Positions 20,424 through 55,736 of a DNA stretch of 64,000 nt are shown piece after piece. This DNA comes from Stylophora pistillata (taxonomy: Eukaryota): assembly GCF_002571385.2 (NCBI RefSeq), contig NW_019218119.1, positions 142,382 to 206,381 of the forward strand. The letters run 5' to 3'. Within the stretch, counting starts at the first letter, position 1. Each line of letters begins with the position of its first letter. The notes under the pieces were generated by a model, which was given only the letters and a program-made list of their open reading frames with translations, had not been told where the DNA came from and did not search any database. The position numbers were made by a program, and so were the translations under genes.

Positions 20424-20591
20424 GTGAGTCGAAAAACGTGTTTACAGTTTATTTTTGTTTTAGTTTTGTTTTTTTTACCGCTTTGATAAACTGAGTTTCT
20501 TGCGTGGGAGGAGAAGCGTGTGCGAATCGAAGGGAAGTGCTTACAGCAACATCAGCGAAGCGTGGAAGATGCGGTCATTTCATTTGTTTCC

Positions 20592-26144: not shown

Positions 26145-26333
26145 ATGCTCAGAAAATACCTGTTTGCGTTGCTAGTAATTTTACATATAGACGGGTTGCA
26201 AGGGAAAAGCGCCACGCAGAAATCGCTGCGACTCCAGCACCTCACAAAATGTATCTACGATTACGAAGTGACAGTTTACACTGCCCGAGGGGACAAGTCT
26301 ACCCACAGCGATGGTTACCAAGTTTACGCTCTG
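26145..26333 (+). CDS. Gene B proximal first exon B3
   Basis: MLRKYLFALLVILHIDGLQG...CIYDYEVTVYTARGDKSTHSDGYQVYAL|gtaagg; signal peptide and phase-0 donor. Confidence 0.82.
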
Positions 26334-29300
26334 GTAAGGCTCACTTCGATCAGTTCAGGTTGATTAACAGAGCTTTCTGTATCACAGTTATATTTCTCTG
26401 TTTCCTTGCATGTGCGACCAGCGTTACAAAATATGCAATGATTTACGCTTTCCTCGGAGAAAGCAAAGCTTGTCACATCGCTTTGTATATAAAGTATATT
26501 GTAGAGGAGACTAATTAGATAAAATAGGAATGGGAAGAGGGAACAGCTTAATCTGCGTTTCCTACGACGGCAGAAAACTGCTGAAAAAGTCGCTCTGTAG
26601 CAGAGAGAATAACATTGAATTGACTGATCATAAAACGACATTATCCCACTCTAGAGTCGTGGTTTTTTTTTCACATGTGTAGACTTCGCGTTTGCAAGGA
26701 AATGGTGTTCGGCTTTGCGCTTTGGTCGGTTAACATTTTTTGTTTTTAGCTTGCTGTTTGCGATTACGCGCTCTAGCATGTGATTCAAAGATATTTTCAT
26801 GAAACGGCTACAAGCAAATGTATTTTTATTTAACATGTATTAGTACGTGTTAAACGCAACGCGTGCAATATAGCAAGTGGAACGAGGCTGATACTTCCAA
26901 GGACTTGATATTCTTTTCAAATACCGTCATGCTATTCTCGCTAATGGTTGAAATTGATCATAGTCATTTTAATTCCAGCTGAGTCGTTTCAACCATCTTT
27001 AATCTTTCCTCTTTCTTTACACACGCTGATTAAAATTCATCAGGCTATAGAGTGCAATAAATGAATTTATATCCATGCTATAAAACTAATCTTTACTCTA
27101 CAAATTACTTGCTACAGTGTATACCTTACCAGCTATTCACAAAGCAAAGGCTTTTTTTTTTCATGAATGCTGCGTATCTAATTCTTGAATGGAGAAAGCG
27201 CTTAAATTGAGTCCACAATTCTGTCTCTCTAAGGCTACAAGGCAGGCTGTTCTAGAAGTTTGCGCCATTGTAGCTAAAACTATTTTTTAGAGACAGTGTA
27301 GTTGGTCCATTAAGACTACAGAAATGTTTTGTTGTGGCAACAGTAACTACTCCATCACTTAATAATGGATTCCACTCAAAAGCGTGCTTAATATCGCATC
27401 CTGTTGAAAGTTCGAATTCAAGAGCCATTGGTCTTATTTTAAGAATTCCCTGGCACAATGATGTGAGAACTGTGGTCAATTGTTTGTTTGACCATATAAG
27501 GTCATGAATTGGATTTTATTGTTCGATCTTCGATAGTTTCAATTCTCCCCACGCACCTTTTCAAAATGTTGGTTTGCGACGTATGCTATCAAAAGATTAC
27601 TCTTGAATCAACTTACACGCAAAGGCACGCAATTACATGTACCTCGCGCAACATTTCCGCATGCCGTCTGTGCTATTTTCGCCACTATGCATGCAATAAA
27701 GGACCCGAATTCGCAAGGAGTATAAGTCTTCCCAGATCGTCTTGGGATTAACTTTACATTTGTAGATTTTTCCTAACTAGTTTTTCTACAACAGGTTTTC
27801 CTTTCGAGTGAAGGTGCGAGTGAAAATATATATATATATATATATGACAAAATGGGGCTTGAAACGTCCTCGTGTCTCTATGCAAATATTACTCTTTTGT
27901 TGGACAAAGACATTTTTTCAAGGGAGAAATTTGAAGTGAAGATTGCACGAAGAGGGCACTACTGTGCCTTTGCTTGACGCATGTACTTAAAAATATTGAT
28001 CACTGATCCTGAGTTACTATTACTTCCTGAAAAAAAACAAACCAGCAATTCAGCAAGTTTGCGCATAGATTCCCAGTGTCTAGATCACAACGGGTTTAAC
28101 AACTGCAATAACTAATTGATTCTCTCTTTTTTAACAACATTGTCTGCTTAAGCAACATTTTCTGGGCTTCCCGGCCCAGGGTATTGATGGATTGATGGAA
28201 TCATACTCTTTGGCTCTGCTTATCATACTATATTTAAAAATATTGTCTACAGAATAAAACACAAAGTATTGATAATGGCTATGTTTAGGAGAGCAACGAA
28301 AGTTATTATTCCAACAGGAATTTCATTTGTTATTTTACTTTATTTTGAAGGAAAGCCTAATTTCGTTGATAATTATTGCCTACGTTTATTTCAGGTCGAC
28401 TTAACACCAGCATCTCGTGACTTTAATGGGAGGGAACACTCGCATCTCATTAAGCTTGACGTGCGGGAACCGCGCTTAAGGCGCCTACATCATGGGCGTG
28501 TTCTTGCCAATCACCCTGTCAATGAAGAGTTTGAAGAGCAGCTGTCAAAACCATTTTACTTCCAGCAGGAAGATCATGGTACCATTACTGACGTTCTTTT
28601 TCCAAAGAGGTCCGAGTCCCCCGAAATTGCGGCCTTCAAGAAAGGTAAGGGGAAGAAAGACAAAATTTATCCCCACATTCATCCACAGCATCAGCACCTC
28701 AACAGTTTGGACGTCCAGATATAATTTTCGATTTACTTAGTACGTACTTAAATGTAATAACGATTTAAGTGCCGTTCAACTGAGGAGCGGAGAAACTACA
28801 GAATATCTCATGTTTAAGGTCTTCGTTGTATAATTTTGACAGCCCTTTCCAATATAAACCATACTCATTTTGTAAATGAATGGTTTTGGCTGAACTAAAC
28901 GTCAAAGATAAGGCTGAAATTGCCTAGTTTCTTTCTTTTACTTGTAGTGAAACTAAAAGGAAACAACAAGAACAACTTTCACGCAAAGTGCACAGGCTGT
29001 TTGAAATACGTATATTTTGATGTTTTGAGGCTTTCTACTAAATTGGCAGATTGGTGTCATGCACCGGAAAATTAGGGTTTCGTTTCAGTCAACTCAGGCT
29101 TATGCTGCACATGAGTTCTCTCCAATAGAAGGGATCGTGGGGAGGGGGAGGGTCATTCTGTTAAACAACGTACGATTTTGCTCCCATTACTCATTATTTG
29201 ACAACAGGTATTGCAGGTGCATTTCAGCTTAACCTTAAAGATGCGCACAGATCCAACATCTATGAAGTACAAGAACACGATGATTCTGGTTTCTTTCGAA

Positions 29301-32300
29301 CAAAGTACAATGTTATGTCAGCAAACGAGACACACGCTCATCTGCATCGCACCTGGACGAACCAAGATTACCAAACGTTTGCGGATGGTACTCCGGCGAA
29401 GGCAGAACACAAGGTGCAGTCTCAACACAGTTCGTACATCCATGTGAAAGACGGAAAGGTAGAAAGAGTTCACCGTACTAATAAGGCATTTTTTAGACCC
29501 GCCAATGGGCATCCAAGGGCAGACAATTTCGAAGGATTTAAAGGCCAAGAGCAAGACATTGAAATGTCAACAAAGGGATACAGTAAACTGACGTTAAGAT
29601 CTTGTCTAACACCTGAACACCATCGTTCCAAGCGCTCGACAACTGAGGAACAGCATGTGAAGATAGCTCGTACTCTCAACAGAGACAATCTTTTGTTTAC
29701 TGATACTGAGAGGATAAACTGGTCCAAGATCGGAGGAGAGAAGAAAAAGCCGAGGCCTTTCTATGAAGTGCTGCGCTGCTTCACCGACAAAAGCATGAAG
29801 GAGCGTCAAATTGCTGATTGCTCTAATGAGATGCATCGTATGGTTCGCGAAGATGAAGACTCTTTTCGAATGATCAATCGACTTGTGCGGGACCGAAGTC
29901 ACCAGAACATCACCTCTTGGGCTGTATATATAGCAGCACTTGCCGGTCATGGAAATTACCAGGCCCAAAACACTTTAGCGCAAGCAGTCAAGACAGATTA
30001 CCCTCGACCTCTTAGCAAAGAAGAATACGAGACACTTCTGATCGGAATTTTCTACTTACCAGAAGGTCCACTTCACTCACAACTCTTTGCTGCCTTGTTG
30101 AACCTAGCATCACAAGAAGAAAAAGGAGATGAAGTTACATCTACAGCGATGCTAGTTCTAGCCGGACTAGCTGAAAGAGCAAAGAGATCGGGATACAATG
30201 ATACCTTATGTGAAAGCGTAGTTGAGATGATTCACAACAGGTACAAAAACAGATCAACACTGTATCATCCCGACAGCTCGGACCACGAAATACAGCTAAG
30301 AGACCACATCTGGGCCTTTGGAAATCTTGGACATTTTTCGGGACTTCCAGTAATCCTAAAACACATTGACCACGATAACTCTGGTATACGATCGGCAGCG
30401 ATCTCAGCATTGCGCAAGCTTCCTCCCGAGCACACGAATCAACACTTGCTGCATGCACTATACACAGATGAACATTCCGATGTTAAAGCTGCCGTTGTTA
30501 ATATCTTTGTCGAGCGTCATCAAAATTTAAGCGATTCAGTAGTAAAAGGCCTAGAGCATGCATTATGGCACGCTCCAGAAAGCGAGACTCTGGACTCCAT
30601 GATTATTCAGCTTATTGAAAATCACGGTGATCACCCTAAGGCCCTCTACTTAAGGAGAAGACGACGTGCGATTCATCGCCAAAAACGTGCTCTCTTTCCA
30701 TTCCTCCGTCCAAGAGAGTTTGCTCTTGGCCGATCGAAGCGATGGTTGAAGACCTATGGTGGTAAGTGGTTGGGTGCCGAAACAATCATCCGGTTCATTA
30801 ATCAGGTGAAGCTGAGAATTGGCATTTTTGGCGGGAACTTTGAGGTTAATCTTGACAACTATGCGCATGTTCATGCTTACATTCTCAAGTTTGGATTTGA
30901 AGTCGTCCGAGGTAAAGCTGCTTTTAAGGCTTCTGTCAGTTTTAAGAATGATTTCCCGAAAGACCTCATCCATGCCGTGGCTGACGCAGGAGACGATCTC
31001 CTCAAGCAGTTTGATAGTATTACAAGTGTGATTGCTGAACAGATAAACCAATTCATCAGCAAACTTGCCGGCTATTTACCGTTGTATATCGACAAATTTA
31101 TAGAGTTCGTCAACAAGTTCGTTCAATTTGTGCAGAATCTAGTGCAACCTCTACGACCGATTAATCTTATCGGAAAAATCATAACATTTACCAAAGATGT
31201 TCTAAGCCGCCTCAAGGACTGGAAGTGGCTCACAAAAATGATAAAGAAAATACAGCTAAGTCTCGGAAGGCTGACTGTCGTAGATGACGTTTTTCAAAAC
31301 GTTATTGCAGCTCTGGACAATATACTTGGCATTGTAGGTAACATAACCAACTATTTGCCCCATGATCTTCCCAGAAATTTCAATATCAAGACACTTCTGG
31401 ACATTCTTCGCTCGGTCTCTGTCGACCTCCATTTTGACAAAATCAAAGAATATTTCAATTCCATAGGTTTATCTGTTCCTGATGGTTTTCGTTTACAGCT
31501 TCCGTTCAAGTTTTCCATCCGCCTCTCGTTTTCTCTGGAAACATTTCAGCAAGTTTCCTTAAATCTTCTACGGTTTGCCAATCGTTTCCTGGATATGTCT
31601 TCCTCGCTTGATTTTCTTCAAAGCATTAGATTCCCCAGGTTACAGTTACCAGACATGAACCAACGATTTCCTCCATTTAGGGGTAGTGGTTTTAACTTTG
31701 GTCTGCGTTTTGATTGGCGGATCAGCTTAAAGTTCAACCTCAATCTGAAATCACCAGGCTTCCAAAATTTTATCGCAATTTTAGAGAAACTTGGAGACTT
31801 TTTAGTGCAGTTCAAACTCCCGGGTTTTGATCTCCAAAAGTTTTTTGAACAAATATTACCTGGCAAGAAGTTTGATCTCGAAGAACTTTTCCAAGGGCTG
31901 TTGGGCGGAAACTCCAACTCGAATTCTACAAATCCGAGTGAAGTTCTACAAGAATTTCTAGAGAGTATTATTAAAGTACTCGACGTTCAATATGGGAATG
32001 TCTCAGCAATAGGTGATATCACAGATTTCTTTCAGGAGCTCGGGCCGGCAATGGAGCAGTTCGCGGAGAAAAACGTACAGCGTATCTGTGGAGTGTATAA
32101 AGTGGCTTTGAACTCAACCAAGGAATTTAAAGAGTTTGGAGAAAACGTTGAGCAGGAAGGAATTCGGGTACTTCAGCTCGTACAGAATACTACCCAAAAT
32201 GCACTTACAGAACTGCTAAACTTTACCATCCTCGTAGATTCTTTAATAGACGAAATTCAGCGTAACTTTACCGTGGCTGCTAAAGGATTCGTCTCGGACT

Positions 32301-35300
32301 CGCTGCAAGAGCTCACCGGCAAACTGAAAGATATTCAAAATCTTGCGGATGATATAGTGGACTTTGCCAACGGGACAGCCTCAAAAGTCAATGGTGCATG
32401 CACCAAAGCTGCAAATTTCTCCGCTGACGTAATAGACAAAGTTCAAGAAAATGCTCGTGAAGCACTTACAGAACTAGGATCGTTCATCGGACCTGTCGCG
32501 ACGAAGATAAAAACGGTTGGGACAGAGTTGAAATCCGCTGTGTCTAACGTCGAGACGTGGTATGAAGAGAACATGGCAGCTCGTGTCGGGAAGATTTCTC
32601 GCGTTGCCCAGATTATTTCAGATTTTCTTTCAATTCTTAATACAAAGAAAGGGTTCCTGAAATCCGTTCGTGAAATAGCTGTTCGGATCAACGAGGCCCT
32701 CGCGCGTCTCAAAAATCTGCCAGAGTACGCAAATAAAGCAAGGAAAACAGTAGATGATATTCTTAACTTTGCGGACAGAGCCCAAGACTACGAAAAAGAG
32801 ATCCAGAAGCTTGATATCAGAAAGCAGTTTGGACTTGACTTTGATCAGCGAATAAAAGATGTCTGCAACGAGTTTAAGACTATCGCTACAGAGACGCTCG
32901 ACAAGTTTGGAAACTACGACATTGTCAAAGAAGTTAATACGTTTTTCAACGAAGAGGCCGATAAGCTCATCAGCAAAGCCGTGTCAAAGTTTCGTAGAAT
33001 TAAAGAACCAATCAACGAGATGCAAGACGAACTGAGAAATACCAAGGCCATGGTGCGTGAAGTTATGGTCGTCCTGATAGAGCTTAAGCCTTTCACTAAC
33101 AATTTTTCGCCTATTCTTGAGACGGCGGGACAATTACCCGACTGCAAGCAGATCAAGAAAATATTCGTAGAGAGCACTAAACCATGCGTCCGCAAAGCTT
33201 TTGGGGTTGGGAGATATGTCATTGATCAGTACAAGGACTTCAAGAAAGAAGTGAAAGTTCTCTATGACATGGTTCCGGCTACATGGAAGAACTTCAAAAT
33301 ACAGAAGTGTATCAAGGGTGGAACTTGCATCTCTAAAGCTTTTATCGATCAAGCTAAAACCATAAAAGATAAGGTCGACGTGCTGAAAGATAAATTTAAA
33401 GAAGCGAGTGGTTACAATGACATGCTTGAAACTTGCGAACAAGGCGTTGATAACATCACAGCTGTGATCGACAGAGTAAAACTCCTAGTGGAACAAGTCA
33501 GGAATTTCTCCCTCAAAGACGATGTTCAAAGAGTGAAGAAGGTTTTCCAAAAGATCACTGGCCGACAGGTCGAAAACAACGAGGGGAGTGGAATTCAAAA
33601 GCGCTCTATAAAAGACGTAAAGGAACGAATCGAAAGAATTGTGGACTATATACAGAAGGCGAAGGAAATACAGAAGAAAATGCAAGATTTGCTCGAGAAC
33701 ACATTCAAATCAATGAGAAATGTCTACGATGACGCTGTTCTAGAACATATTAAAGCGGTTAGAGATGTGCGTTCTAAACTTAAACTGTCATACGAACTGT
33801 GGAAGAAGACAAAGAATATAAACCACGTCCTACAAGCACTAGATACTGTTACCCAAGGTGCCTCAAGATATGCTGATAACTTAAAAGGTGTGACCAATTC
33901 ATTCTCGAGCCCAATCATCGACCTCTTATCTGAAACGGGAGAACTCAGTGATGTCGTGAAGCCCTATCTTGACAAATATGCGAACAAATTCACTGATACT
34001 GTTACAAAAGTCAACAACTTTTTGGACGAAGTTACCGACTTTCTTAGCAAGTTACAGCTGCGACAGAGAGGATTGGACCCCAGGGCCTACAAACCGTGGG
34101 AACAAATACCATATTGCTCAGGGGAAGTCTGTGTACGATCAATCAAACGATCTTCATCACTTTATCTAAAGACCATTTTCACTTGGAAGTTCCCGCATCT
34201 AGACGACCTTTCCTCCATGGATAAGAGTGGGCGATGGCTGACCCCTGGTTTATTTGATGACTATAAAGTAGAGGGTATTTCAAGGCTTTCCAAGAGCGAG
34301 GTTATTTTGGGTATGCACGGAGTCTCAAGTAACAAAGGGAAAGCATCGCTTTTGGTGGTTACCAATTTTGGTAATGGAGTTAAAAAGATAATTCAACTTG
34401 GTAGTCAAGGAAGCCCTCTAGTTGTGAAAATAGGAGGAGTAGCTGTTGCTCGAGATTGGATCTGGATCAGTGACAGCGCATCAAACAAAATTTATTCCGT
34501 AAAGAAATCTGGTGTGACAAGTTCCTTCTCGTCGCCAAAGCCATCTTGGATTGGTGTGTCGAAATCTGCATCAGTTGAAGGTAGTGCAACTTCTCTTTCA
34601 TACGATGAGCCAACAAATGTCCTTTGGGTAACAGACGGCAAAGGTGGAAAGGCCTACGGCTATAAGCTATCTGCGAGTGGGGATCTGTCTTCATCTGGCT
34701 TAACACCTGACAGAGTAATCATCATCGGAGCAAACGCGCAAGGCATGGGTATCGTCAGACAGTTCAGTACCGAGTATGTTTGCATCTCGAAATGTGCCAT
34801 GATTTCTGGTTTCCAATGTAAGCTCGAGTTCCATGACATCAGTGGTGGTGATGAGACCGGAGAAAACACGCTCTCTAGGGTCGTTAGAACCCCCTCGGGC
34901 TTAGAATCGGTCTCCAGGGTTGACAATGAAGTTATTGCAGTGGCGTTCTCAAGTGGTACTTATGCTGAGAAAGATAATGTAGAGCTTATAGGTGGCGACT
35001 TTGAAGAAAGATATTTCTATATAAGACTGCCGATTTTGAAAATGACTTTTGGAATCCAAGAGAACTGCCTCTTTTTTACAGTTATGAATGACTACATTCT
35101 GCGACCCCGGAGGTTGTTTCCATTCGGAGATATGATTTGCGGAACCACAAGAAAGCGAAGCACCTCGCAAGAGCTCTTAGAGTCTGATGTTTATTCTGAA
35201 CAACTGGAAGAAGTTCATAAGAGTAACAGGAGAATGCGAAGGCAAGTCTCAGATCTCGGATCGTGTATGACCTTGTTCCGTGGAAATGTTCTTAGGGGAT

Positions 35301-38300
35301 ATCATAAATTCTTCCCTGAATATTCGCAAACCATCATTGTGTTTGGCATACCTGTAAGACTATTTGCTGGGGCTGGTGGTTACTATAGTGTGGACTATCA
35401 AGGGCAAGTTTGTATGAGAGACAAAGTTTTCAGACTTAGTCTCATCCCTGGAGCCTGGATCTCTGTATACGCTGGAGCTTCTTTGTCACTTTTTATTGTA
35501 GAAGCTGGAATTACGATTGAGGCAAGACTTCTAGAATCCTACTTCGTACCAGAACTGAGAATCAAGATCGATAAGTGGCCGCTTAAAGCCTGCATTGAGC
35601 TTAGGCTACGAATGACTCCTCTTCGCATAAGAGTTTGGTTGTGGTACAGATTCCGTCTCTGCATTCGGATCAAGTGTAAGTTGTTTGGCTGTAGCATTAA
35701 GATTAAATGGTGTTCGAAGAAGACCCTTGCGGAGTGGTGGTGGTCAGCGAGAACGATCGACCGGACGCTCTTTACAAATTGCCACGAAGATGTAGACACA
35801 ACGCCTCCTATCGCTGGGGAATGTACTGCAAGGCAAGCTGCTGACAAAAAATATTTCGTCCAGTGGCATGGATTCTACGAAGATACTAAAATAAACAACT
35901 ACCACGTGAGGATAGGATCCATTCAGGGTTCTGGCGATGACTACTCTGCATGGGTGGGAACATCTTTAAGCGTAGTTATCAACGATCTCCCAATAATGCA
36001 TGGACGAGACGTGTTTGTCAGCGTATTGGCGACAAATGACATGGGTCGTGACAGTAAGTTAGTTAACTGCCCACAATTTACGGCTAGACGTAAGGGTCCT
36101 CAGATTCGTTATGTCTACGATGGTGTCGATGAACATCAAGATGCAGATTATCAGTCAGATACATACGCTTTAGGTATGAATTTTGCCCTCAAGAGCAATA
36201 TTGAAGATATTGCATTCATAAAATGGGGGGTATCGTCTGTTACCAGCTGCACTTTTGACGAAGCTGAAGCAGATATCGTTCCTCTGACGACTCTTGGTGA
36301 TTCAACTACCATCCAGACATCTAGCCTAGATTTGCATCACGGCAAAAAATATTTCACACGCCTTTATGCGATGGATTTGTTTGGACTAAAAGCAGTTATG
36401 TGCAGCGATGGTATTTTGATTGACACGACACCGCCTTTTGCCGGGTATTTCCAGGATGGTGCTGGTGAAGCTGATGCAATGTTTCTGCCATCGCTAAGGC
36501 GTGTTCGGGGAAAATTTGATCTTTTCAAAGATCCCGAGAGCCCTATGGTGAGATACGAGTGGAAGATTTCAAGAAACAAAACCGATGAAGATGTTACATC
36601 ATTTGTAGATATTGCACTCACACAACAGACTCCTCTTATGAATGGCCTTTCTCTTGAAGCTGGTTTCCCTTACAAGCTAGTACTCCGTGGAACAAATGCG
36701 GCTGGACTTCAAACAGTTATTGAAACAAATGGATTTGTGCCAGATAATACGCCGCCGTATTGCGAAACGAATGCTATTGACGTAACGAACAATGAAGATT
36801 TGTTTGATGTTGACTTTGTAAGAAAACTGAGCAGTATTCAAGCAAAATGGAAATGTGGGGACCAGGAAAGTGGCATCAGCGCACAACTGGTAGGAATTGG
36901 CACTTATCCAGGAGGACATGACGTGAGAGCATTTGAAGATGTCACCTCTGTTACCCACAAAGTCTTCAAAGATGGGATGCTTTTTGCGAGTTTTTCTGAT
37001 GTCAACATTCTTCCGCGAGTAAGATATCACGTCTCCATAAAGATTATAAATGGAGCTAACCTTAAGAAAACCATTTCTTCCAATGGCATTATCATTGACA
37101 ATACACCGCCCACGGTCGCTTCACAATACATTAAAGATGGCGTAGAGGGGAGGGATAAGAACTACACCAGCGAAAGATATATCTTTAGCTCACACTGGGA
37201 ACAAGCGTTCGCAGATTCAGAAAGTGGCCTAGTCGAATATCGCGTTGGTTTAGGGACTAACCCTGGACTGGATGACATTAAGAATTTTAAAACGGTTGGC
37301 TTGCAAACCAGAATGACCATTTCAGGTCTTTTTCTGAGCAGTGGTCAGCGTTATTTTGTTACAGTTGTTGGCTGCAAGGGTGTTGGTATGTGTACTAATG
37401 GCAGTAGCAATGGAGCCATTGTCGACTTTATTCCTCCACACACTGGAAAAGTCATCACCGGATTAACGGGTCCTCCTCAGTTGTTTCAGTGGATAAGTAA
37501 ATCAGTATGGGCACGATGGAATTGGTGTTTAGAGGATGAACAGAGAGTATCTGGACCAGTCGACCCTGATCAGTGCAGTAACGACAGCTTCTACGATGTA
37601 CATAGTGGTGTTTCAGGTTTTGGTATTGCAGTAGCCTCTTTGAAGACTGATGCCCTATTGGCCGCACCTATGACGGCTGGACGAGTGAGGTCCACTGGGC
37701 GTAACATTGACCTTGAAGATGGAGTGTACTCAGTGGTTATTGAAGCAAAAGATAAAGCAGGTGTTGCTGCACGCGGCTTGTCAAACACATTCATCGTTGA
37801 TACTAGTCCCCCTCTAATAACTTACGTCCAGCATGGACATTTCAGCGAAACACTGACATTTATAAACACACCGCGTATTACTTTCAGAGCGTATTTCGAA
37901 ATTGAGGACGATTTATCCAGAGTCGCAACGTACAAGGTGGGAGTTGGAAGCTATCCTGGGGCTGATGACGTCATGAAATTTCAGTCGACTCCATTAACCA
38001 CACCGATGTCTTCAATGAGAGCCAACTGGACAGCGCAAAACTTGTTATCCGTGGAAAACAACCGACGTTATTATATTACCATCTGGGCCATCAACAACGC
38101 TGGGCTGTTTAGCATCAGATCATCGCCCCCTCTGCTTTCTGACCAAGAGTCCCCAAAGAGAGGAATCATCCTAGACGGATGGGGTTCAGTAGATGCCCAG
38201 TATCAAAGCTACTCCACTCTATTCCGTGCCCACTGGTATGGCTTTACTGATTTCTCTGGTGTTGAAACGGTACTATTAGGTTTATCGAGCAGGTCAGACT

Positions 38301-44300: not shown

Positions 44301-47300
44301 CTTTGCTACCCTCACTCTGAGTTGATGTATTCATTGGAACAGGGTTATAAATTATTCTGGGTCGCATTAAAAGAATTTAATCATCCATTAATATTTAAAA
44401 CAGGTTAGGCTATGAAAAAAGGAAGGCTTTGAGGGTTATTTTAATCTTTGTCTTTTTTGTTGATGGAGTCGTTGTTAGGCTGTTTTTGTCTTAGACATGT
44501 TCTTATTGTTCTCGTCGATTGAAACGATATGGTTTGCTGTTCATTGTAGGTCCCCTTTCTGAAGGACAAATTATAGATGGAACAAAGGAAGGTGAAGACA
44601 TTGACATGCAACAAAGCAGAACCCAAATAGCAGCTCGCTGGAAAGCATTTGAAGACCTTGAAAGTGAAGTCGTTCGTCTCACGTGGTGCGCTGGATTGTC
44701 ACCAGGCTCTTGCGATCTAGTCAATGAAACTGAACTTACCATATCCAGTACGTCTGTCAGCAAGGTTCTCGTTGAACCCGTCACGAACGGTAGGCGGTAT
44801 TTTGTCACAGTGAAGGCAATGAACGGCGCAGGTGTCCAAGCTTTACTTACGTCGGATGGAGTGACAGTGGATGAAACGCCACCCACATCTGGGCATGTCA
44901 TTGATGGGAGTGACACAGATGTCAATTATGTGAATGGGGAACAAGATATCCGTGCCTCTTGGTTTAACTTTGAAGACTTGGAATCTGGTATTAAATCCTA
45001 TAAACTCGCTTTATGTGACGCCAGGAACCTCTCCTCCTGCCCACAACCTTTTACTGGAGTGGGGCAAGCTACAAATGTCTCAATAACAGGTGAAATATGT
45101 TTAAGGAAGTTGATATAAACAATAGCCTCCGATTAGCCCAAAAAGTTTTACGGATATATTTCCACACACATTATCTGTTGAGATGCGAACAGTTTTTCGT
45201 GAGCGAGACTCGAGTCAAACTTTGAGCAACTATGATTATTATTTTTATTATTATCATTATCATCATTATGATTGATATTATTACTGATCATTATTTCAGT
45301 TTATTTTACAAGACTTCATGAACGGAGAAATGTTTCCCTTCCCTGTTGTAACAACCGCAAAATACTCCCTCATCTTTAATTAAATCTTAAACTTTCAAAT
45401 TTGCGTTTATATGGGTGAGCTCCAGCGAGCAAACGCTCAATGATAGTACGGCTGCTAAGAAAATAAGTGCTTTTTACCACAACTCCTCTCCGCCTTTAAT
45501 GGAATGCTCCTCCAGTACAGCTGTGTCTGACATTATTTGCAGATGGTCATTTGCACTCCCTGGTGCCGCTGTAACCTCACCATGTCCACATTATTCTGTC
45601 TAATTTTGAAGCACTATTTGTAATAACAGATATACCTCATTCGATGGTTTGACATATAATACGCGCAGATATTTTGCACGTTGCGTGGTATTTTTTCCGA
45701 GCTCGGTAGGGGTGAGGAAAAAAATACACGCATATATGTCAAACCATCAAGTAAAGAGTTTATTATTCCAGTATTATTTGATTTTATTAGTCTTTTGGTC
45801 TTCTAGTTTTCGAACATTTGTACGGTCTTATCAGAGCATCTTTTTGATCGCATAAGGTGTATGTGAAAGAAGAAAACAACCCTAAAGGAACCTTTGTGTG
45901 TTATTGTGACAAAAAAACTGGGCTTCGGAGTTCATTGCTGAAAAAGTCGTGTTAAAAAACGAAAAAGAAATCAATGATCGCGTGGATCGTTTCTGTCCGT
46001 ATTTTTGCCCTGTTCTACACTGTAATATCGTGGCATATTTTGTGCGATCCATTCCCCTACTATGATAAAATGGCATAATAGCTAGTGGAAAAATGAGAAA
46101 TATCTCGCGAAGGTAATCTTCATGCTTTCGTTGTGTAGGCTTAGACCTCGAGAGTGGCGCTCAGTACGTTTTCGTCGTTAGAGCCATCAACTTCGCTGGT
46201 CTTCATGTTGAAGCTTCCTCCGATGGTTTCACAGTAGATTTTACCCCTCCTTTGCCAAGTGAAGCAAGATTAGGAACTGGAATTGAACCCGCCAAATACC
46301 AGTCAGATATGACGAAGCTGGTTGTCAGGTGCTGTTCACAATTCGCAATAAGATTTTCGGATTAGTCATGTCCTCGATCAAGATTAGAGAATGTTGTAGT
46401 GGCTGGTGCAATATTTAAGAAAGTAGAAATTGGATCAAAAAAGGACGCGAGGTAGTCCTTGTAAGGCCAATACATTTAGATGTACATCTGGTAGAGTAGG
46501 AGAGGTGGGTTAGCGTGTTACAGATTCGTAGATACGAAAACAAGATATATGTGTTAGTAAGAATTTTTCATCAATCGTGACATGTCTTCTATAGAAGTTG
46601 TAGACACTCAATTTACTAATAAGCTTTTCTACACTTAAACTGTTTTCATCTCGAAAGTTGCTCGACTCAAACGATTTATGATTTCACCAAAACACACACT
46701 AAACTACCATATGTTTTGTGCAGGTGGGATCAGTTTATTGACTCTGAGAGCAGAATTTCGGAATACCAAGTCTGCGTCACTTCTGTGCCCGGAAACTGTA
46801 CAGTCACTAACTACGTTGACGTTGGAAGGAATACAAGCTTCACTTTCCATGGCTTACAACTTCTCCATGGCGAAGCCTATTATGCTGTTATCAAAGGAAC
46901 AAACCACATTGGATTATCCTCAGACAGAACAACGAATCGAATATTGATCGATTCAACGCCTCCTGTCTTAAAAGATGTCGACAGCGGCTGGATCAACACA
47001 ACTCATAAAACTCCTGGTGGAAACAATACCGTTGACCCGAGGGTTCAATCTCCATCCAACGACACCACCCAAGGAAGCATTCATATGCGATTCAGCTGCT
47101 TTGAAGAACTATTGAAAGCTGACTGGGATGAATTTGAGGATCCAGAGAGCCAGCTAGCGCGTTATGAATGGTGTGCTGGGACATCTCCAGGCTACTGTGA
47201 TATGGTAACTTTGAGGTCAGTGAATGTGAAGATAAAAGGAGCTGCTCTTGTGAAGAGACTCCTTTCAGGTACGATCCTGTTTGCTACAGTATACGCCATC

Positions 47301-50300
47301 AACGGAGCAGGATTGAGAACTCGTTTGGTGTCTGAACACTGCAAGGTCATATCCATTGCACCTAAGGTTGTGGAAGTTATTGACATTCCTAGTTTGAACA
47401 CAAGCAATCTTACTGACATTGACTGGAAATCTATGGCGCAAAGTTTGTCACTCAGATGGGAGATAATTGGAAGATATGTCAAAGATATTTCGCGTTTGCG
47501 TATTCAGGTGGCCATCACACAGCCTTCCCCGAACGTGTCTTTACCGCATATTAACTCAGATAGGTCCTGGCGTAGCGAACCACTCGTACACGATTTCATG
47601 GACGTCTTGACATGGCAACGAAATGTGACTATCCGAGGCGTTGCATTGTAAGGATGGGAACGTTATCGAGGGGTTGTGAAGGTTTGGAACGAAGGAGGTA
47701 TATACAGTGAGTCTGCGAGTGATGGACTGAGAATCGAACCCACCGCTCCTCCAAAGCGTGGATTATTCATCTTGGATAAAGGCGCCGAGCAAGAGCCCCT
47801 CCGCTGGCTTCCAAATCTGAGATTGCCCCCGGTTAATGACAGTGCATTAGATTCGGAGGTAAAATATATTTCCTCCCTTAGGGAAGTGGAACTGATTGTG
47901 AGAAGTGGCTTAAATGACTCTAGCAACAGAACAGCTTTTATTTTGGATCACAAGCTTTTCAGTCCGACCAAAGAATTTAAAATCGTTGTCCAAAGAGTTA
48001 CGTCTGCGGCGAATGAAACCAACACTATTGAAGATTCAAGCATAATGAAAGTATTCCCAGGTTTTGTCGATCCCGAGGGTCCTTGTTGTACCAGACACCT
48101 TGTTGATCCACAATCTGTCTTCAGTGACACGCATTTTAAAACAACCATACCGTCCCAGCATTTTGGAGTTTCTATCGCTAGGCTACCAAACGATCAGTTT
48201 GCTGTTGGTTCTGCAGATAAAGCGTTTGTTTTGCCTCTTCGAAACAGGGCTGCAAGCCACATAACATTACCAAATGACATTGCTGGTTCCCCGACAACAC
48301 CCATCATGGTGGTATCATACAGTAATAGGTCCGCATTCTTGGCCAATGGCAAAGCTTATATTTACCGTAGTGAAGTCAGTGACGATGGCAAGCTTGAATT
48401 GACCAGGATCGCTATTCTTGGAAACTGCAAGACTGTTTCAACAGCTGTTTGTGCTGCCAAAAGCAAATGGGCCGATAGTGTGAAACACGTGATAGCCATT
48501 AATCGGAATACGATCGCTATGACGGGAGTCAACTCATCTACGAACGCCAGTGTTGTAGCCGTATTCCAAGAACGGGGTGGATTGTGGAGGTTTGCGCAAA
48601 CACTGAGAAGGGGAAAAAGTGATTCTGACTTTGGATGGTCTTTGACTATGAATGCACGCATCCTAGCAGTGGCGACAGGAGAAGGAAAGAACTCTTGTAT
48701 CTCGGTATACTCTGTCGAATCTTTTTCATTGGTCATGACACTTTGCATGTCTGAGCTCGAAAATATTACAGGTGGTCTGTCACTTTATCTTACGGAGACT
48801 AACGCGCTAATTATGGTCTCTAAGGACTCCAGGTGTGTAAAAGTTCTTCAGCTGAACATTTCATCAAAGTCCTTCAAAAACGTATGTCAGCGTGAGTTCA
48901 CACCAAACGAACGTCTGAGTGGATACCTGGATGTGAGTGCTCGCGATGGAGGTTTCATTATCGCGTTAGGTATGCAGACTTTAGACGGCCGGGATGGTGT
49001 GCAACTGGTAGGTTTCCATGGAATCTACTCAGATTATAAACTGAGGAAATGCGCAAACTTAGGGAGTGTGGTCGCGCGAGAAAGTGGATTTAGAGTAGAT
49101 GATGGCATTCCACGCACTTCCGTATCATTTGACAATGAGACCGTTTTGTTTGGAGCCCCAAATGATGTCACATGGCCAGGACAGGGTGAGGACTCAGGTA
49201 CTGGAAAGGTCTATGTGGCAACGTATTGCCCTACTAATCATATAAGAGTTCGCGTTTCTCAGATAAACGAAATTGGTTCTGTACGTTGCGTGCCTTGCGA
49301 GGCTAAACGGAAGTCATTTGGGGGGTTTGCGGAAATGTGCTCAGAGTGTGAAGGAATGCGATGTTCAGCACCTCAAAGCGACGATCCGTTTAGTTTTAAA
49401 TCAAGTATCTGTGATTCGTTTTCCTGTCCTTCTTCATCGACTGTGAATAACTCGACAAATGGCGTGAACTTTTCGTTCCCGAATGAATCATTTCTTGTCC
49501 CTGGTCCAGAAAACCTGTACACTGTACAATTACTTGAAACAACACGAGCCCATCTCTCAACAAGTTCTCTCACGGAGTCGTTTGTCATCGATCCGACATC
49601 CCCTGAGCCTGGAATCGTCTACGATGGACTGGGCAGCGACCCAAACACGAACTGCTCAGACAATTCGACATTAGGTGAAGACAGTCAGTGCTCTACTCGA
49701 AGCTTTGAAGAAACTGATGTGGACTATACCAATAATACGCGAGAGGTACACGCCAGATGGCTTGACTTCCTTGACGAAGAAAGCGACATTGTGGAGTACT
49801 TCTGGTGTGTAGGATCAAGGCCTATGAGTGACGACATCCGGGAATGTGAGAGTACGGGATTCAGGCCAAACGGAAGTCATTACGGTCTTAATTTTGATCA
49901 GGGTGACTCTTACTATGTGACAGTTGTCGCCTGCAATGGAGCTCGCAGATGTTCAGCCGCTCACAGTGATGGCGTCACAATAGATACTACACCGCCTGTG
50001 ATGGAATATGTCAGGGATGGAATCATGGGTCCTGATATGGATTTCCAGGTATACAAGCCTGACGCTAGAGTAAAGAATTTTTTCCTGATTCATTTCATAA
50101 GCTATTACTTATTTTCCAAGATGAGATCTTGGAAGTGTTTCTCGCCATATCACCAAAATGCTCGAATTCACCGAATTATTTGGTTTCTAAAATGAAGCAA
50201 ACCAAGTTTTTCTTTGCTACCTGGTTCGTAACTCACTTGGACTCAGGATACTGACAATGATTCCTTGAGAAGTTTGAAAGGCTAGAAAGCAATTTTGATT

Positions 50301-53300
50301 ATTATTTGCTAAACGATTTCTCATAAAGTAATTAAACGTATCATTATCATCGTTTTTTGTTTTTATTATTGTTGTCATTATCATTATTATTATTAGAGTA
50401 ATTATTATTGTAAAATGTCTCACTTTTCAACTTTTTTTCATCGTAGGTCTTTGTTGATATCATCTTTGCCTATTTCTCTGCGAGTGACCCAGACAGTGAT
50501 GTGACGTCATACGAAGTTGCTTGGGGGACCGCACCTGGTTAAACAGATATCAAAGAGTTCGAAGAAGTTACCAACACGACTATATGGTTGGCTAAGTTCA
50601 AAGACAACGCACTCGGCGTAGGAAAAAAATACTACGCTACTGTGCGCGCCACAAACGGTGCTGGTCTTCTGTCAGAAAAGCTTTCTTCCGACGGAATAGT
50701 AGTCGGCAAGTCGGAATACACTTTTGACAACGCGTCCACCGCCGAGTTTTTCTTTGATACGGTAAATGTTAAAGAAGACGGATCGCGCAAAGATGGAGGA
50801 GTGGGAAAGACATACGGGACATTGACTGTACCTGAAGGTGCTGTTGAGGAGCAAGTGAAGTTGAGATCGTACAGCTTGGATGAGGAAACTATGGATACAA
50901 ACAAGACTGAGGAGGGTCCTGTTAGCAACCCTAAGTACACTAGGCCTAAGGTATGATTTTGATTGGTTTAAATAATGACAGATGTCTTTTGTTCCCTTCC
51001 TCGTTCTTTCTCTCTATCTGAATAAAGGCTGATAGTTTCTAAAGAAAATATTTGGGGCTGCGTCGGTGGGGGTAACGAATTAATTTGAATATATCAACAA
51101 AGTTGAAATGGTAAATAATCGTTATAATCGTAACGGTGGCCAATTTACCTTTTCAACTTTCTCTCTATCTGTCCGTGTCTTTCCTTCATTCAGCAGTTTG
51201 TCGGCTTGTTCTTTTTTTGGTTGTTTCTTTGTTCGTTATTTTCCACCTAATGAGTATCCTCCGTCATAGTTAAACTCGAATTTGGACAGTTGCATGGCTT
51301 TTAATGAACATCAATCTCTGAGAATGAAGAAAATGACGTGTACTTTGCAGAAGTGCGGGGAAACTCCTGGAGAATTTTCAATTAGTGCAACAGTAACTTC
51401 TGTTCTCTCATCTCTGTGCAAGACCTTACGAGGAGGGCTGTCACTTGCGGGTGGAATGTTAGAGGTGTAGGTGTGACGACTGACAAAAACATTGCTTGCT
51501 ACATCAGCAACAAACTCACTCATAGTGTTCCTGTTTTAATTGTACAGCAATTCATGCTTGGAAATTACAGTTTTGTCATAAAGGCGTTAGACCCGCAGAA
51601 TGACACGGTGAAAGAAGGCTTCAAGTTTGCTAAGCCAATCACAATTGCCATGTTCTACGACGTTGACAACCTGGTGAAAGCCAACAGTAAGCATGTCAAT
51701 AATGAACTCACCAAGGAAGACATTGACCCTGTGTTGTATCTGTGGGATCCCAAGAATGAAACCTGGTAAGTTTGCTGCTGCAGGTTGTTAAAACTTAAGT
51801 GGAAAAATAGCCATTTAAGAAATGCTTAAAGAATGTGCGAAGCATCGCTTTTTTATTCAGCGAGATGATGTAACTCAAACGTATAATGGTGGATTTAAAT
51901 TTTACATCTCGAGTTACCAGGGATCAATTTTTAGGCCATACTTTTTAACCCTGGAAACAGATTTTTTTAAATTCTCAGTATTCCCAAAGTTCCGTTGCGA
52001 AAGGTTCCAACCTGAAACGATTTTGGGATCTTACGCCTCTCTGTAGAGTAAATCATTGCTTAATTAACTAATTCCTAATTAATTTCATATTTTGATAATG
52101 GGCAAAGGTGATTGATTGGCTCGTGCAATGAAGGACACCTTGATGATTAAACAAGATTTGTCATCATCATCTTGCCATCGTTATTGGTCTATGCATCAAG
52201 CGAAATATTTAGCTTATTGTTTACTTTTTTACTTTCTATCTGTGGCTTAGGATTGATGCCGCTTTCACATGCCCTGAGCCCTGGAGTCACGTGAACAGGT
52301 CGATTAAACTGTTGACAGTAAAAGTCTGTCACCTGACTCAGTTTTCCTTCCTTTGGTCATTCTACGCTAAAAATGGTCTGGTTTTATTCGACAAAAACAA
52401 CTCAAGTAAGTGCGATTGTGCCATTTAAAGAACCCTGTCGTAAAACTAGAGAAAAGTCCACAATCCATATATCAATAGTTTGGCCTTGGTTTACATATGA
52501 AAAAGTTATCCATAGAAGTGTTGATAAAGGTGGATTATCTTAGAGGTTGCTATCTAGATCTTAGTAAAGCAACAAATTATCTGCCTTGCATATAGCAAAT
52601 TCAAATTTGTTGCAATTAAATACCGGACATATCCGAGTCGGATATTGGATTATGTACACTGCTAATTTTCTCTTATTATTTTAAGTGTCATCTGCACACT
52701 ATTCCTAAGATGCCTCCCCAACCTATTATTGGGCTTCTTGCTTTCGGATTGCCTTGATTTCTTATTGGTTTTAACTCGACTACTGACCAAAATTACTAGC
52801 GTGTTTATAGTACGGTTCTTCTTTTTTTTTGCAGAAGTAATCTTCGAAGCTGAAAGGCATATTTATATGTATGTAATGATTTTATTTCCTGTTTCTCTGT
52901 AGTGTACAACGACAATGGAGCTGTAGAAATTACCCTTCCCAGACAAGTCACCAAACTGGAATTTCCAGTACGTAGAGCGAAAGGTTCGCTGGGTGACATA
53001 ACTGTGCGATGGTCTCTTTACCAAAACGATTCATCAGACAGTATGGAGATGCTGTGGCCGAAATCTGGACAAGTGTCATTAACTGATGGTCAGTGGAGCG
53101 ACTCGTTTATCATCAACGTCGATAGTGACAAGAAAGAAGTACACGAGAGCGTAGTCTGGGTCCAGTTAGACAAGACCACAGGTGGCGCTGTCCTTGCATC
53201 ACGTGATCAAACCACAGCCAAGATCTTAATCGCTGGAAATGAAGAGAGGAATGGGAACTGGATATGGATTGTGACTGGCGTCGGTTGTGGAGTGTTGCTT

Positions 53301-55736
53301 ATTATTCTTGTTGGTGTTGTGTGCTGGCGACGTAGAAAGAAACAAGAATCACAGAGGTAATGTTCGAAAGACATTTTTAACCCTAAGCGAATAAATTTTC
53401 AACAGCGAATACTCTTCTTTAACTACTGCTGCAAAGAGCCTGCTGATGAAACTTAAAATTTACCTTGTATAAGAGATACCAAGGAATTAAGTGTAAGGGT
53501 CCTGGCTGGAGCCTTAGCCGGGTTTCCGGGTCGCGATTTAGGGCGATGCACTTTATTTTTGCATCGCCTCGCCTCATAATGGAGTATACGCTGTAAACTG
53601 ATGCTAGTAAGCTGTTAGAGAAACACTAACTGGATAGATATTTATCCAGTATATAGCGTTGTCTACGCTTCCCTTCCAACAACCGGAGTCAGAAGGATGA
53701 AGAAAACACCCCAGCCCTAATATACCACAGAATTGGACAAAGGCTCCACATGAAATGATCCTAAGGCTCTCTAGACACAGTAACATCCTGTCATTGTACT
53801 TTTGTAGGATTGTGGAAAGGACATCCGAGATTGAGCTTCCCTACTGCAGTACAATGCGCGGAAAACGAGACTTGACTGAAAGAATGTATGGTAGCAATGA
53901 TGACACTCTACAACCCAATGTGAATGCTGTTCCACAAATGTATGCTGGTGATATAGGGACATTGAGTCTCGTTCCAAAAAACACACAAATGTAAATCTAG
54001 AAATGCCTGGTTCTAGCATGTAATACGTAGTATGTTGGACATTTGTTTGGTTAAGGGCTGGTATAGCTTATCGACAGAATGCCATGTCATTACAATGCTG
54101 ATGAATGACTTTTTATCACAATATAACATATGATGGAGAGCATGCTAAGGCTGATGCACAAAAAATGTGCTCCTACAAAGAGACTTTCATGAGCCAAAAT
54201 ATTATTCATTTTATTTATTTTTCAATGCAGGCTCCTTTCTTCTCTACCGGGCACCCCTGAGATACATCGCGTGTTGAACCCGGAGCAGTCTGGTGATGAG
54301 GAAACGGACAGCCTTAGCAGTAGTGTGGAGTCATTTTTGGATGAAGGAAGCGACAGCGCAATGCGACCAATTTCTGGAAAGAAGAAAAGCTTCAGACACA
54401 GATTAACAAGTACAGTGATTTTCTGTTCATTTGTGCTTCCTTTTGCGTCTCCTCTCTCTAGGCAAACTTTCCTAAACTAAAACAATAGGAGTTAGACGAG
54501 CAAGTTTGAGTAAGTCAGTTGAGGTTCTTTTTTATTTTAGAAGTGTCTGGGGATAAATCTAGCTTTAGTCTCAAGTGTCAAGGCAGTAAAGGGTGAAGGT
54601 GATCAAGGAGGGACGAGAGCTAATAACATTTCCTCTACTGTTCTTAAAAATACCCAATTATTTATGAGTGATGCATCGCTATATGTCGTATTTTAGACCG
54701 GCTCAGCATGGCAACGAAAGACAAAAACCATCTTAGCCCTGCAGCAGCCCTTACCCCAGCAAGCAGCGACGATGAAATGGAAACTTCTTTCACATCTTCC
54801 AAAAGGACTGGAATGGGTGTAAGTAACCCACTGTATGACTCGGGGCTGAATAATACCCCAGAAGTCTCCGAGGCTGAATCGACATGCCCTCAGATAGGCA
54901 CCCCGGAGTCCAAGGAACGGAAACAAGTAAATGTGAGGTAGGAGGCTGTTATCTGCCTGGAATAGTGTCCTTTACGGTTTTCTTTGACCAATATTGTTCG
55001 TTAGCTAAGAGAAAAATTGATCCTCACAGAGAAAATAGAATGCAACCAATTGTATAAGTTAAAGTTCCTCTTCTCCGCAAGCTCCCTCCCCTCCCCATTG
55101 CCAAAAAAAACAACAACAAACTAACTAACTAACAAACAAGACAAGACAAAACAAAAAAAAAACAAAGACAATAAACTCTAGATTTTACTGACAGGTCGGA
55201 TGTAAAGTAAATCATACGTTGTAGACATCCATATTTTTATACAGGATAGCCCCTTCAGTGTAGTAAACACTGGCATCAACGGGGTCCTGTTACCCACCCA
55301 TCCCCGGCCACCCCAGGGAAGGACATCCATTACGCAGTAATCTCGTGTGTGGGAAATTAACGTCTCCTGCCCCTAACCCTGCAGGAGACGGGACCTCCAT
55401 TTATTCGTCCCTATCCCAGAAGACTAGAATATCTAAACATTTCTTGCTGTTATAGAAAGGTAGCATATCCTTCTCAATTATTTTAAGACCCTGAGTGTTG
55501 GTCCAGCCGGGGCTCGAACCCTCGACCTCCCGCACAACAGTTCAGCGCTCTATCCATTAAGCTAACCGGGAGGCGATTAGCTCAATGTAAATGTGAATGT
55601 TTGCTAACACAATTAAATTTCAATTAGGACGACCAGGGAACATGGAATTAACAGCCAGGATAGGTCTGCTTTGACTGAAAACACCAACACTCCAGAAGAC
55701 TCGGTCGGATACGCCCAAAAAACAACCGAAGATTGA
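26145..55736 (+). CDS. Gene B: ~6949-codon type-I membrane protein with vitellogenin/apoB-like N-terminal domain, ~30 FN3/Ig-like repeats, propellers, ZU5/GPS-like site, Calx-beta, TM and NPxY tail; two premature TAA codons
   Basis: Exons 26145-26333, 28395-28644, 29208-41255, 41673-43300, 43572-44208, 44550-45089, 46139-46328, 46724-50048, 50447-50950, 51548-51765, 52251-52405, 52903-53356, 53808-53990, 54231-54409, 54697-54937, 55628-55736. All GT-AG with consistent phases; total 20850 nt. The last four (cytoplasmic) exons are less certain. Confidence 0.82.
28395..28644 (+). CDS. Gene B exon 2 (lipoprotein N-terminal beta region)
   Basis: tttcag|GTC...LSKPFYFQQEDHGTITDVLFPKRSESPEIAAFKKG|gtaagg. 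Spliced to exon 3 it gives KKGIAGAFQ, resembling the Vitellogenin_N 'N(I)K(K/R)GI...FQ' motif. Confidence 0.88.
29208..41255 (+). CDS. Gene B exon 3, 12,048-nt giant exon
   Basis: Uninterrupted ORF 29198..41302; acceptor caacag|GT, donor CAAG|gtaagc. Contains LPD_N-like helical repeats (IWAFGNLG...IRSAAISALRKL), an apolipoprotein-like helical region, a propeller-like region and ~17 repeats. Confidence 0.93.
41673..50950 (+). CDS. Gene B exons 4-9: further repeats, FG-GAP-like propeller and Cys-rich module; in-frame TAA at 47649-47651 and 50540-50542
   Basis: ORFs at 41693, 43551, 44519, 46716, 47676 and 50588, plus unlisted exon 46139-46328. ORFs 46716 and 47676 are in the same frame, separated by a single TAA. 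Confidence 0.85.
45641..45750. repeat. Short palindromic repeat element in a gene B intron
   Basis: gatggtttgacatata...tatatgtcaaaccatc. Confidence 0.6.
51548..53356 (+). CDS. Gene B exons 10-12: ZU5/GPS-like domain (CHLTQF), Calx-beta-like domain, transmembrane helix and basic stop-transfer
   Basis: FAKPITIAMFYD...LYLWDPKNETWIDAAFTC...LTVKVCHLTQF; VRRAKGSLGDITVRW...GQVSLTDGQ...VQLDKTTGGAVL; WIWIVTGVGCGVLLIILVGVVCW-RRRKK. Confidence 0.82.
55230..55575 (-). mobile_element. tRNA-derived SINE in the last intron of gene B
   Basis: Minus strand begins gcctcccggTTAGCTTAATGG (A box)...GGTTCGAGCCC (B box), followed by a non-tRNA body (accaacactcagggtcttaaaataa...). Confidence 0.75.

Follow-up and report, generated by a model that had tools for sequence, protein, structure and literature searches.

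The 64,000-nucleotide stretch of Stylophora pistillata DNA analyzed here (contig NW_019218119.1, positions 142,382 to 206,381 of the forward strand; hereafter the window) carries a real, transcribed gene that encodes a type I single-pass membrane protein of ~6,900 residues, at the N-terminus of which lies, we conclude, the barrel and helical horseshoe of the large lipid transfer proteins (LLTPs). LLTPs, i.e., vitellogenin, apoB, apolipophorin, and MTP, are soluble carriers of yolk, of plasma lipoproteins, and of lipid loading in the lumen of the endoplasmic reticulum, and how they arose at the base of animals is still a matter of debate. Read from the outside in, the coral protein consists of a signal peptide, the LLTP barrel and helical horseshoe, a furin-type site with a short beta segment, ~1040 amphipathic residues, an orphan domain, ~30 FN3-like sandwiches interrupted by a non-repeat region, a juxtamembrane module with an H-L-T motif, a last beta-sandwich, a transmembrane (TM) helix, and a tail with an acidic serine cluster and an NPxY motif. 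The family to which it belongs, present in anthozoans and sponges, has no name; it is the first membrane-tethered form of a protein class whose other known members are all soluble. We infer, as a modestly probable function, that the protein acts as a surface capture or endocytic receptor.

A transcribed gene of 15 exons

All coordinates refer to the whole window, in which the gene lies on the + strand. The window has ~40% G+C and long introns, is eukaryotic, and has its nearest relatives among stony-coral proteins. Open segments that are collinear with the main reference, the Montipora capricornis RefSeq protein XP_068740821.1 (P0013; 6,916 residues), span from 16.3 kb or 26.1 kb to 54.9 kb on the + strand, and RefSeq models of 6,650-6,917 residues from Montipora, Nematostella, Dendronephthya, and Oculina are collinear with the window gene. 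Exon borders were set by canonical GT..AG sites with compatible phase and by collinearity with the Montipora protein. The resulting 15 exons run from the signal-peptide exon to the stop codon at 54939-54941 and sum to ~6,900 codons, which agrees with the ~7000 amino acids estimated in an earlier reading of the letters of this stretch (the original prediction). The exons are as follows:

16276-16470, + strand: candidate first exon E1a, with an ATG, a signal-like peptide, and the first barrel strand C-T-Y-D-Y-E-V
26145-26333, + strand: candidate first exon E1c, with an ATG, a hydrophobic signal-like peptide, and C-I-Y-D-Y-E-V; GT donor at 26334
28395-28644, + strand: exon 2, barrel strands including LSKPFYF, ending in F-K-K-G; canonical AG/GT, phase-compatible
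29208-41255, + strand: giant exon 3 (~4016 codons, 12 kb), with the rest of the head, the helical rod, the orphan domain, and 17 repeats
41673-43300, + strand: exon 4, beta-sandwich repeats
~43572-44208, + strand: exon 5, beta-sandwich repeats
44550-45089, + strand: exon 6, beta-sandwich repeats
46139 to ~46328, + strand: exon 7, beta-sandwich repeats
46658-50048, + strand: exon 8, two repeats, a non-repeat region of ~780 residues, and more repeat sequence running into exon 9
50447-50950, + strand: exon 9, the last repeat and the start of the juxtamembrane beta module; 82% identity to P0013
51548-51765, + strand: exon 10, the middle of the juxtamembrane module; 84% identity to P0013; RNA joints
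52251-52405, + strand: exon 11, the end of the juxtamembrane module, with C-H-L-T-Q-F at 52327-52344; RNA joints
52903-53356, + strand: exon 12, a beta-sandwich, the TM helix (53259-53327), and a basic stop-transfer stretch
~53808-53947, ~54229-54400, and 54697-54941, + strand: three tail exons encoding the cytoplasmic tail; inner borders approximate

Exon 2 shares 69% identity with P0013 residues 68-148 and is conserved in four related loci (L001, L005, L006, and L008). The giant exon lies in an open frame of 4045 codons (29165-41299) with 69% identity to P0013 residues 142-4184; its donor at 41255 is the sole phase-compatible one and pairs with the acceptor at 41673. Exon 8 is 61% identical to P0013 residues 5142-6271, an alignment that continues across an in-frame TAA at 47649-47651, and its donor at 50048 is backed by RNA joints. 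The motifs on which the original prediction was built all occur on the + strand at the places given for them: C-x-Y-x-Y-E-V at 26250-26270, LSKPFYF at 28542-28562, IAGAFQ at 29210-29227, AFGNLG at 30314-30331, and IRSAAISALRKL at 30386-30421.

The first exon, comprising the signal peptide and the C-x-Y-x-Y-E-V strand, occurs in three copies (16276-16470, 20198-20429, and 26145-26333), and the copy at ~20.2-20.4 kb is broken, being spread over three reading frames. By sequence comparison, E1a, which lies 10 kb upstream of the previously proposed start, is the conserved first exon; it matches P0013 residues 2-69, and the orthologous locus L001 has an intact version of it with 83% identity, whereas no counterpart of E1c was found there. 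The span of 26145-55736 that had been assigned to the gene begins with the ATG and signal-like peptide of E1c; coding ends at 54941, so that 55736 would fall in the 3' untranslated region.

The continuity of the gene was assessed by comparing contigs of two DNA runs and two polyA RNA runs, obtained in different studies, over window positions 47500-53400; the RNA evidence consists of assembled contigs, which show presence and splice joints, not the level of expression. The RNA contigs skip the predicted introns exactly (50046>50445, 50948>51546, and 52405>52903; all GT..AG), and a further joint, 51767>52253, fits a canonical intron starting at 51766 when an A>G variant at 52252 is allowed. In RNA run X8, contig 23 (11.2 kb) carries ~8.2 kb of mRNA upstream of 47500, which by exon arithmetic takes it into the giant exon, and its downstream end lies at 50844; contig 25 (976 nt) has 30 nt in common with the end of contig 23 and then continues through exons 9-12, including the TM exon. 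A loose end of an X8 contig matches position 53809, in the first tail exon. RNA run X17, from an independent study, displays the same joints as X8, with a contig that runs 1.1 kb past 53357, and both ends of exon 9 as well as the exon 11-12 junction are spliced in the RNA of the two runs. Since the head and 17 repeats lie in a single 4045-codon frame, no splicing is needed to link them.

The original prediction had allowed that the TM exons might belong to a separate gene; in the RNA contigs, the TM exon is joined by splicing to the exons that encode the repeats. It is scarcely conceivable that the gene model is an artefact in which a neighboring secreted LLTP-like gene and an FN3 membrane gene are read as one: the first exon is uncertain, there are 14 introns, and the whole gene is not spanned by any single RNA contig, but the head and 17 repeats share one uninterrupted exon, the stretch between the giant exon and the TM exon is bridged by overlapping RNA contigs in two independent studies, and the same architecture has been predicted independently in four anthozoan RefSeq/GenBank annotations, with a C-terminal TM segment also in the model of the sponge Corticium. 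Pseudogenization, in which the window copy would be a recently disabled paralog with two nonsense codons, is a highly improbable alternative as well. It derives from two in-frame TAA codons, at 47649-47651 (exon 8) and 50540-50542 (exon 9), which the original prediction left unmentioned and both of which fall on conserved residues; in addition, the genome holds three clustered paralogs, one of them with a mere 865-codon open frame. However, all four runs, DNA and RNA alike, carry either C or A at position 47649 and either C or T at 50541, which gives the sense codons CAA/AAA and TCA/TTA at the two sites; in the orthologous locus L001, which is syntenic through introns with 87% DNA identity, the codons are CAA and TCA. 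Moreover, zero frameshifts occur in ~20 kb of coding sequence, and the exons are covered and spliced by polyA RNA contigs. The residues of homologs are E, D, H, or K at the first site and L at the second.

A wider pattern accounts for the two codons. At seven sites within 5.9 kb, the runs show two alleles and the window a third letter, and the change always follows the rule Y->A, M->T, or R->C, which also argues against a disabled copy; further letters private to the window obey the same rule:

47649, 48944, 49487, 50158, 50541, 51776, and 51798: third-letter sites, at which the runs are biallelic
48197, 48849, 49360, 49572, and 53052: five further window-private letters following the same rule

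These three changes are those that a common packing of International Union of Pure and Applied Chemistry (IUPAC) codes into two bits, (ASCII>>1)&3, would give. Because the third-letter pattern fits ambiguity codes at heterozygous sites of the source assembly, the TAA codons are read as MAA and TYA; most likely, the gene is intact and both TAA codons are mis-rendered ambiguity codes. A genome copy compared at both sites has letters identical to those of the window and so is not decisive. Heterozygous sites genome-wide may likewise appear as wrong bases and yield false stops, which could mislead other readings.

The LLTP module at the N-terminus

The N-terminal part of the protein had originally been described as a vitellogenin/apoB lipid-transfer domain. 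The features of the ectodomain that bear on this description, and on the stalk that follows it, are listed below:

29210-30700, + strand: LLTP N-terminal module in exon 3, with the remaining barrel strands and the helical horseshoe (exon residues 1 to ~497)
29618-29638, + strand: furin-type site R-S-K-R-S in a barrel loop; R, K, R, and S nearly invariant in alignment A1
30671-30694, + strand: furin-type site R-x-[KR]-R / A-L at the end of the helical domain, in 9/10 rows of A1
30728-30979, + strand: short beta segment (RIGIFGG..FEV ... FKNDFPKDLIH) after the helical domain, with invariant columns in A1
31010-34129, + strand: amphipathic helical region, ~1040 residues, after the head
34082-35974, + strand: orphan globular domain, ~630 residues, with basic furin-like sites at 35147-35164 and 35228-35245
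35795-47375, + strand: ~27 beta-sandwich (FN3-like) repeats of ~108 residues each, exons 3-8, collinear with P0013

Alignment A1 comprises the first 760 residues of the giant exon in ten members, for which nine related loci were fetched, with identities of 39-93%. The Pfam family of the LLTP N-terminus, PF01347 (curated cut-off 24 bits), exceeds its cut-off in 6/10 trimmed homologs of A1, the best with E = 1.9e-8. In one close homolog (P0002), which has 87% identity to the window across residues 1-760 of the giant exon, the match reaches E = 7.2e-8 and 31.9 bits, and residues 3-434 align to profile positions 111-553; as this alignment begins at position 111, the first ~110 positions of the family are assigned to exons 1-2, which carry the Y-x-Y strand and LSKPFYF. 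Precomputed PF01347 matches exist for the Nematostella and Dendronephthya proteins, and members further removed pass the cut-off too, among them a protein of Sycon ciliatum (P0095) at 40.2 bits. Furthermore, hhalign aligned the A1 family profile over 386 columns with P0202, a sequence that matches the N-sheet of PF01347 at E = 1.6e-25.

The AlphaFold model of the exon 3 head has a predicted local distance difference test (pLDDT) score of 75-93 in its helical part. When this model was searched with Foldseek, ranks 1-7 were taken by MTP, lipovitellin, honeybee vitellogenin, and apoB100 (E from 8e-7 to 1e-4; 536-680 columns), with 6i7s, 1lsh, 8eoj, 9enr, 9ens, and 9bd1 among the top entries, ahead of solenoids. 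The original prediction was to be abandoned if the N-terminal region had no LLTP N-terminal fold; the solved members of precisely this class head the fold search.

Several results weigh against a full lipid-transfer assignment. Scanned singly, exons 1, 2, and 3 of the window, as well as the first 700-760 residues of exon 3, gave no PF01347 match at E<=10 or E<=1, so that the profile check proposed earlier succeeds with members of the family and leaves the window's own copy below the reporting level; HEAT_2 is the sole Pfam match in the window's head (34.5-34.8 bits). Searches of PDB sequences with the head, alone and as a profile, returned only HEAT / alphaRep proteins. The model falls below a pLDDT of 50 after residue 495, and only three short strands, at residues 534-557 and also with pLDDT <50, follow the helical domain. 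In lipovitellin and MTP, the C and A beta-sheets form the lipid cavity; a Pfam match to the open beta-sheet, DUF1943, is absent from the window and 10 homologs, and the cavity may be missing.

These results might be explained if the N-terminal domain were a generic HEAT/ARM solenoid with a spurious likeness to vitellogenin, and in VIA-align, MTP is level with many solenoids, as would then be expected, with an MTP alignment that extends to model residue 610. Nevertheless, we regard this explanation as very unlikely, since the PF01347 matches cover positions 111-553 and include barrel strands ahead of the helices, the barrel motifs follow each other in the right order across exons 1-2 and the start of exon 3, Foldseek puts the LLTPs before the solenoids over 536-680 columns, and the family profile aligns with P0202. 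The LLTP N-terminal barrel and helical module is therefore retained from the original description, and the term lipid-transfer domain is overstated, because the cavity sheets were not found and the model is unreliable past residue 495.

Analogous to the soluble LLTPs, the coral protein combines a signal peptide, N-terminal barrel motifs, and a double-layer helical horseshoe with matches to family PF01347 and a fold search topped by the solved LLTP classes. A furin-type R-x-K/R-R after the helical domain is also known from apolipophorin-II/I and insect vitellogenins. The short beta segment that follows this site recurs in two distant relatives (P0094 and P0144). Contrary to the LLTPs, the coral protein is anchored by a TM helix and continues for ~6,000 residues after the head, comprising the helix, orphan domains, and FN3-like repeats; neither a DUF1943-type cavity sheet nor a von Willebrand D domain was detected, the latter giving no Pfam match in any exon scanned, and the likeness in sequence is marginal.

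Stalk, membrane anchor, and proposed function

The long helical region proposed in the original prediction corresponds to the ~1040 residues behind the head, in which hydrophobic residues recur with a periodicity of 3.4-3.6 residues (z = 12-14 vs shuffles). Its sub-threshold Pfam matches, Apolipoprotein A1/A4/E at 24 bits (cut-off 90) and ApoLp-III at 20 bits (cut-off 36), are treated as compositional. The orphan domain behind it, which carries long alternating hydrophobic strands, is better conserved than the head, with identities of 50-96% (alignment A3) vs 39-93% for the head at the same loci; no relatives of it were found in Pfam, in PDB sequences, including a profile search, or in the ESM Atlas. 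A jackhmmer self-search of the repeat array yielded 33 full or partial matches, corresponding to ~29-30 divergent units of ~108 residues, and Pfam fn3 (PF00041; cut-off 25) scores 52.4 bits in exon 3, 35.0 in the next exon, and 25.4 in the following one, in line with the ~30 beta-sandwich repeats that had been counted by the original reader. The repeats are interrupted in exon 8 by the non-repeat region (47350-49680, ~780 residues), in which FG-GAP-like motifs and a cysteine-rich segment are seen by eye; a Pfam FG-GAP match is absent from the window exons scanned singly, also at permissive thresholds.

The C-H-L-T-Q-F motif of the juxtamembrane module (52327-52344) is conserved in Montipora, Oculina, Nematostella, and Dendronephthya, i.e., from octocoral to stony coral; the juxtamembrane exons, taken singly, match no Pfam domain (GPS, GAIN, ZU5) and no PDB sequence. 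The last extracellular domain, in exon 12, is a beta-sandwich, the model of which has a pLDDT of 56.5. A beta-sandwich had been predicted at this place and labeled Calx-beta, a family name that we could not confirm: PF03160 has no match in 52905-53357 at E<=10, a Pfam domain is precomputed in 0/66 exon-sized homologs of the exon, and neither the exon sequence itself nor a 45-sequence profile retrieved anything relevant from PDB sequences. Foldseek of the low-confidence model returned several CALX/NCX Calx-beta domains, only at E = 0.05-0.12, and a wide VIA-align search of the same model gave no Calx-beta match.

The single TM segment and cytoplasmic tail of the original prediction are borne out by a hydrophobic segment of 23 residues (53259-53327), which is modeled as a helix and followed by RRRKK, and by a tail of ~200 residues up to the stop codon. 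The tail, which aligns with that of an Oculina protein (P0017), contains an acidic Ser cluster (54762-54791) close to an NPxY motif (N-P-L-Y, 54825-54836), and NPxY/NPxF recurs in the tails of Nematostella, Dendronephthya, Corticium, and the Oculina paralogs, the last with as many as four or five copies. Neither this motif nor the furin-type sites and the orphan domain figured in the original prediction.

Based on this architecture, the protein is proposed to be processed by furin-type proteases in the secretory pathway, as are apolipophorin-II/I and insect vitellogenins, and it would stand on the apical surface with the LLTP head far from the membrane. With an assumed ~3.5-4 nm per FN3-type domain, 30 such domains would give a stalk of well over 100 nm. 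The head and/or the orphan domain may then bind a particulate or lipid-rich ligand, as in a capture receptor, and the NPxY motif and acidic tail may recruit PTB-type adaptors for endocytic or phagocytic uptake. The capture of symbionts or microbes, also suggested originally, is speculation.

The main rival to a capture receptor is an adhesion or mechanosensory surface protein, in which the head would be only a docking or dimerization module with no role in lipid binding or uptake, the stalk would bridge to matrix, skeleton, or a neighboring cell, the H-L-T motif would be a force-sensitive autoproteolytic joint, and NPxY would connect through talin/kindlin to actin. This reading is rather unlikely in our estimate, and the present data do not separate it from the capture receptor. 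The ectodomain is composed almost wholly of adhesion-type modules, the lipid-cavity sheets were not found, a conserved H-L-T motif lies just outside the membrane, and the barrel and helical parts of lipovitellin and MTP are known to mediate protein contacts. NPxY is also the motif of integrin-beta tails, where it serves the binding of talin and kindlin, so that the tail does not single out endocytosis. However, the acidic serine cluster beside NPxY and the multiplied NPxY of Oculina resemble sorting signals more closely, the amphipathic helical kilobase is conserved and has only weak apolipoprotein-like matches, and no junctional or matrix-binding domain has been identified.

Other known systems close to the coral protein are the LDL receptor family, megalin/LRP, and CED-1/Draper/MEGF10, which are likewise type I proteins with a large modular ectodomain and a conserved cytoplasmic NPxY by an acidic serine cluster. 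The coral protein differs from the LDL receptor family, megalin, and CED-1 in that Pfam finds no LDL-A, YWTD propeller, or EGF domain in it, and from NPxY receptors in general in that a 'ligand-type' LLTP module sits on the receptor-like chain itself. With ADGRV1, the GAIN/GPS of polycystin-1, and ZU5 proteins it shares a very long repeat ectodomain and a beta module ending in C-H-L-T-x-F outside the membrane. In contrast to adhesion GPCRs and polycystin-1, it is single-pass and does not have 7 or 11 helices, and it has no GPS, GAIN, ZU5, or Calx-beta Pfam match; by our reading of the motif, the cysteine pattern of C-H-L-T-Q-F also differs from that of a canonical GPS.

A conserved form of this kind, tethered to the cell by a stalk of ~6,000 residues, would show that LLTP heads already served in a quite different setting early in the evolution of animals, namely surface capture, uptake, or adhesion; the gene also adds a strongly conserved domain with no detectable relatives, and the idea is testable in Nematostella, in which an ortholog is present. 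A more far-reaching and doubtful scenario is that an ancient membrane-anchored LLTP branch existed in the sponge-cnidarian ancestor and united a binding head and an endocytic NPxY receptor in one molecule, that soluble carriers with separate receptors represent a later or parallel division of these roles, and that the orphan domain is a new ligand-binding fold.

Distribution, paralogs, and neighboring sequence

Word-indexed searches with the head and the orphan domain returned anthozoan names only, i.e., Montipora, Acropora, Desmophyllum, Oculina, Nematostella, Dendronephthya, and Paramuricea. When 1.84 billion representatives were searched with a profile, proteins of 5.9-7.9 thousand residues were added, the clusters of which contain Corticium candelabrum and Oscarella lobularis sequences; a fragment of 2,883 residues from the calcareous sponge Sycon ciliatum matches as well. 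The Corticium protein is collinear with the window gene and ends in a TM segment and an NPxY-like tail. Full-length homologs are therewith present in Nematostella, where the ortholog is XP_001634336, in octocorals, and in homoscleromorph sponges. No named bilaterian homolog was among the matches of the searches run, which does not prove its absence.

The original statement that no named gene has this architecture agrees with the databases, in which the homologs are all annotated 'uncharacterized' or misnamed, and with literature searches by accession, architecture, and membrane-bound vitellogenin, which in the library searched retrieved nothing relevant on the family. Two proteins of Paramuricea clavata (P0300 and P0302) bear the name 'DNA double-strand break repair Rad50 ATPase, partial', which is presumably wrong and due to their long helical region. 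The 'vitellogenin-like' proteins of coral skeletons (PMC4890752) were considered as the same thing and set aside; they consist of Vitellogenin_N and VWD and do not have this architecture.

Three head-bearing paralogs lie within 120 kb on the same contig, at contig positions 171591, 236553 (- strand), and 290547 (- strand); the third has only an 865-codon open frame at its head and may be broken. Oculina likewise has three paralogs on one contig. Upstream of the gene described here, and head-to-head with it, lies a gene on the minus strand (window 420-7071) with frames at 420-1016 (198 codons) and 1450-7071 (1873 codons) and with FN3-like repeats. This gene was rejected as a further paralog, as a tblastn search of window 1-26000 with residues 1-2300 of exon 3 returned nothing, neither a counterpart of the LLTP head nor one of the helical rod or the orphan domain, and the two genes share repeats only. 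Within intron 9, at 50849-51242, all four runs show contig depths as high as 10^5-10^6 together with numerous loose ends, which indicates a very high-copy repeat or mobile element inside this intron.

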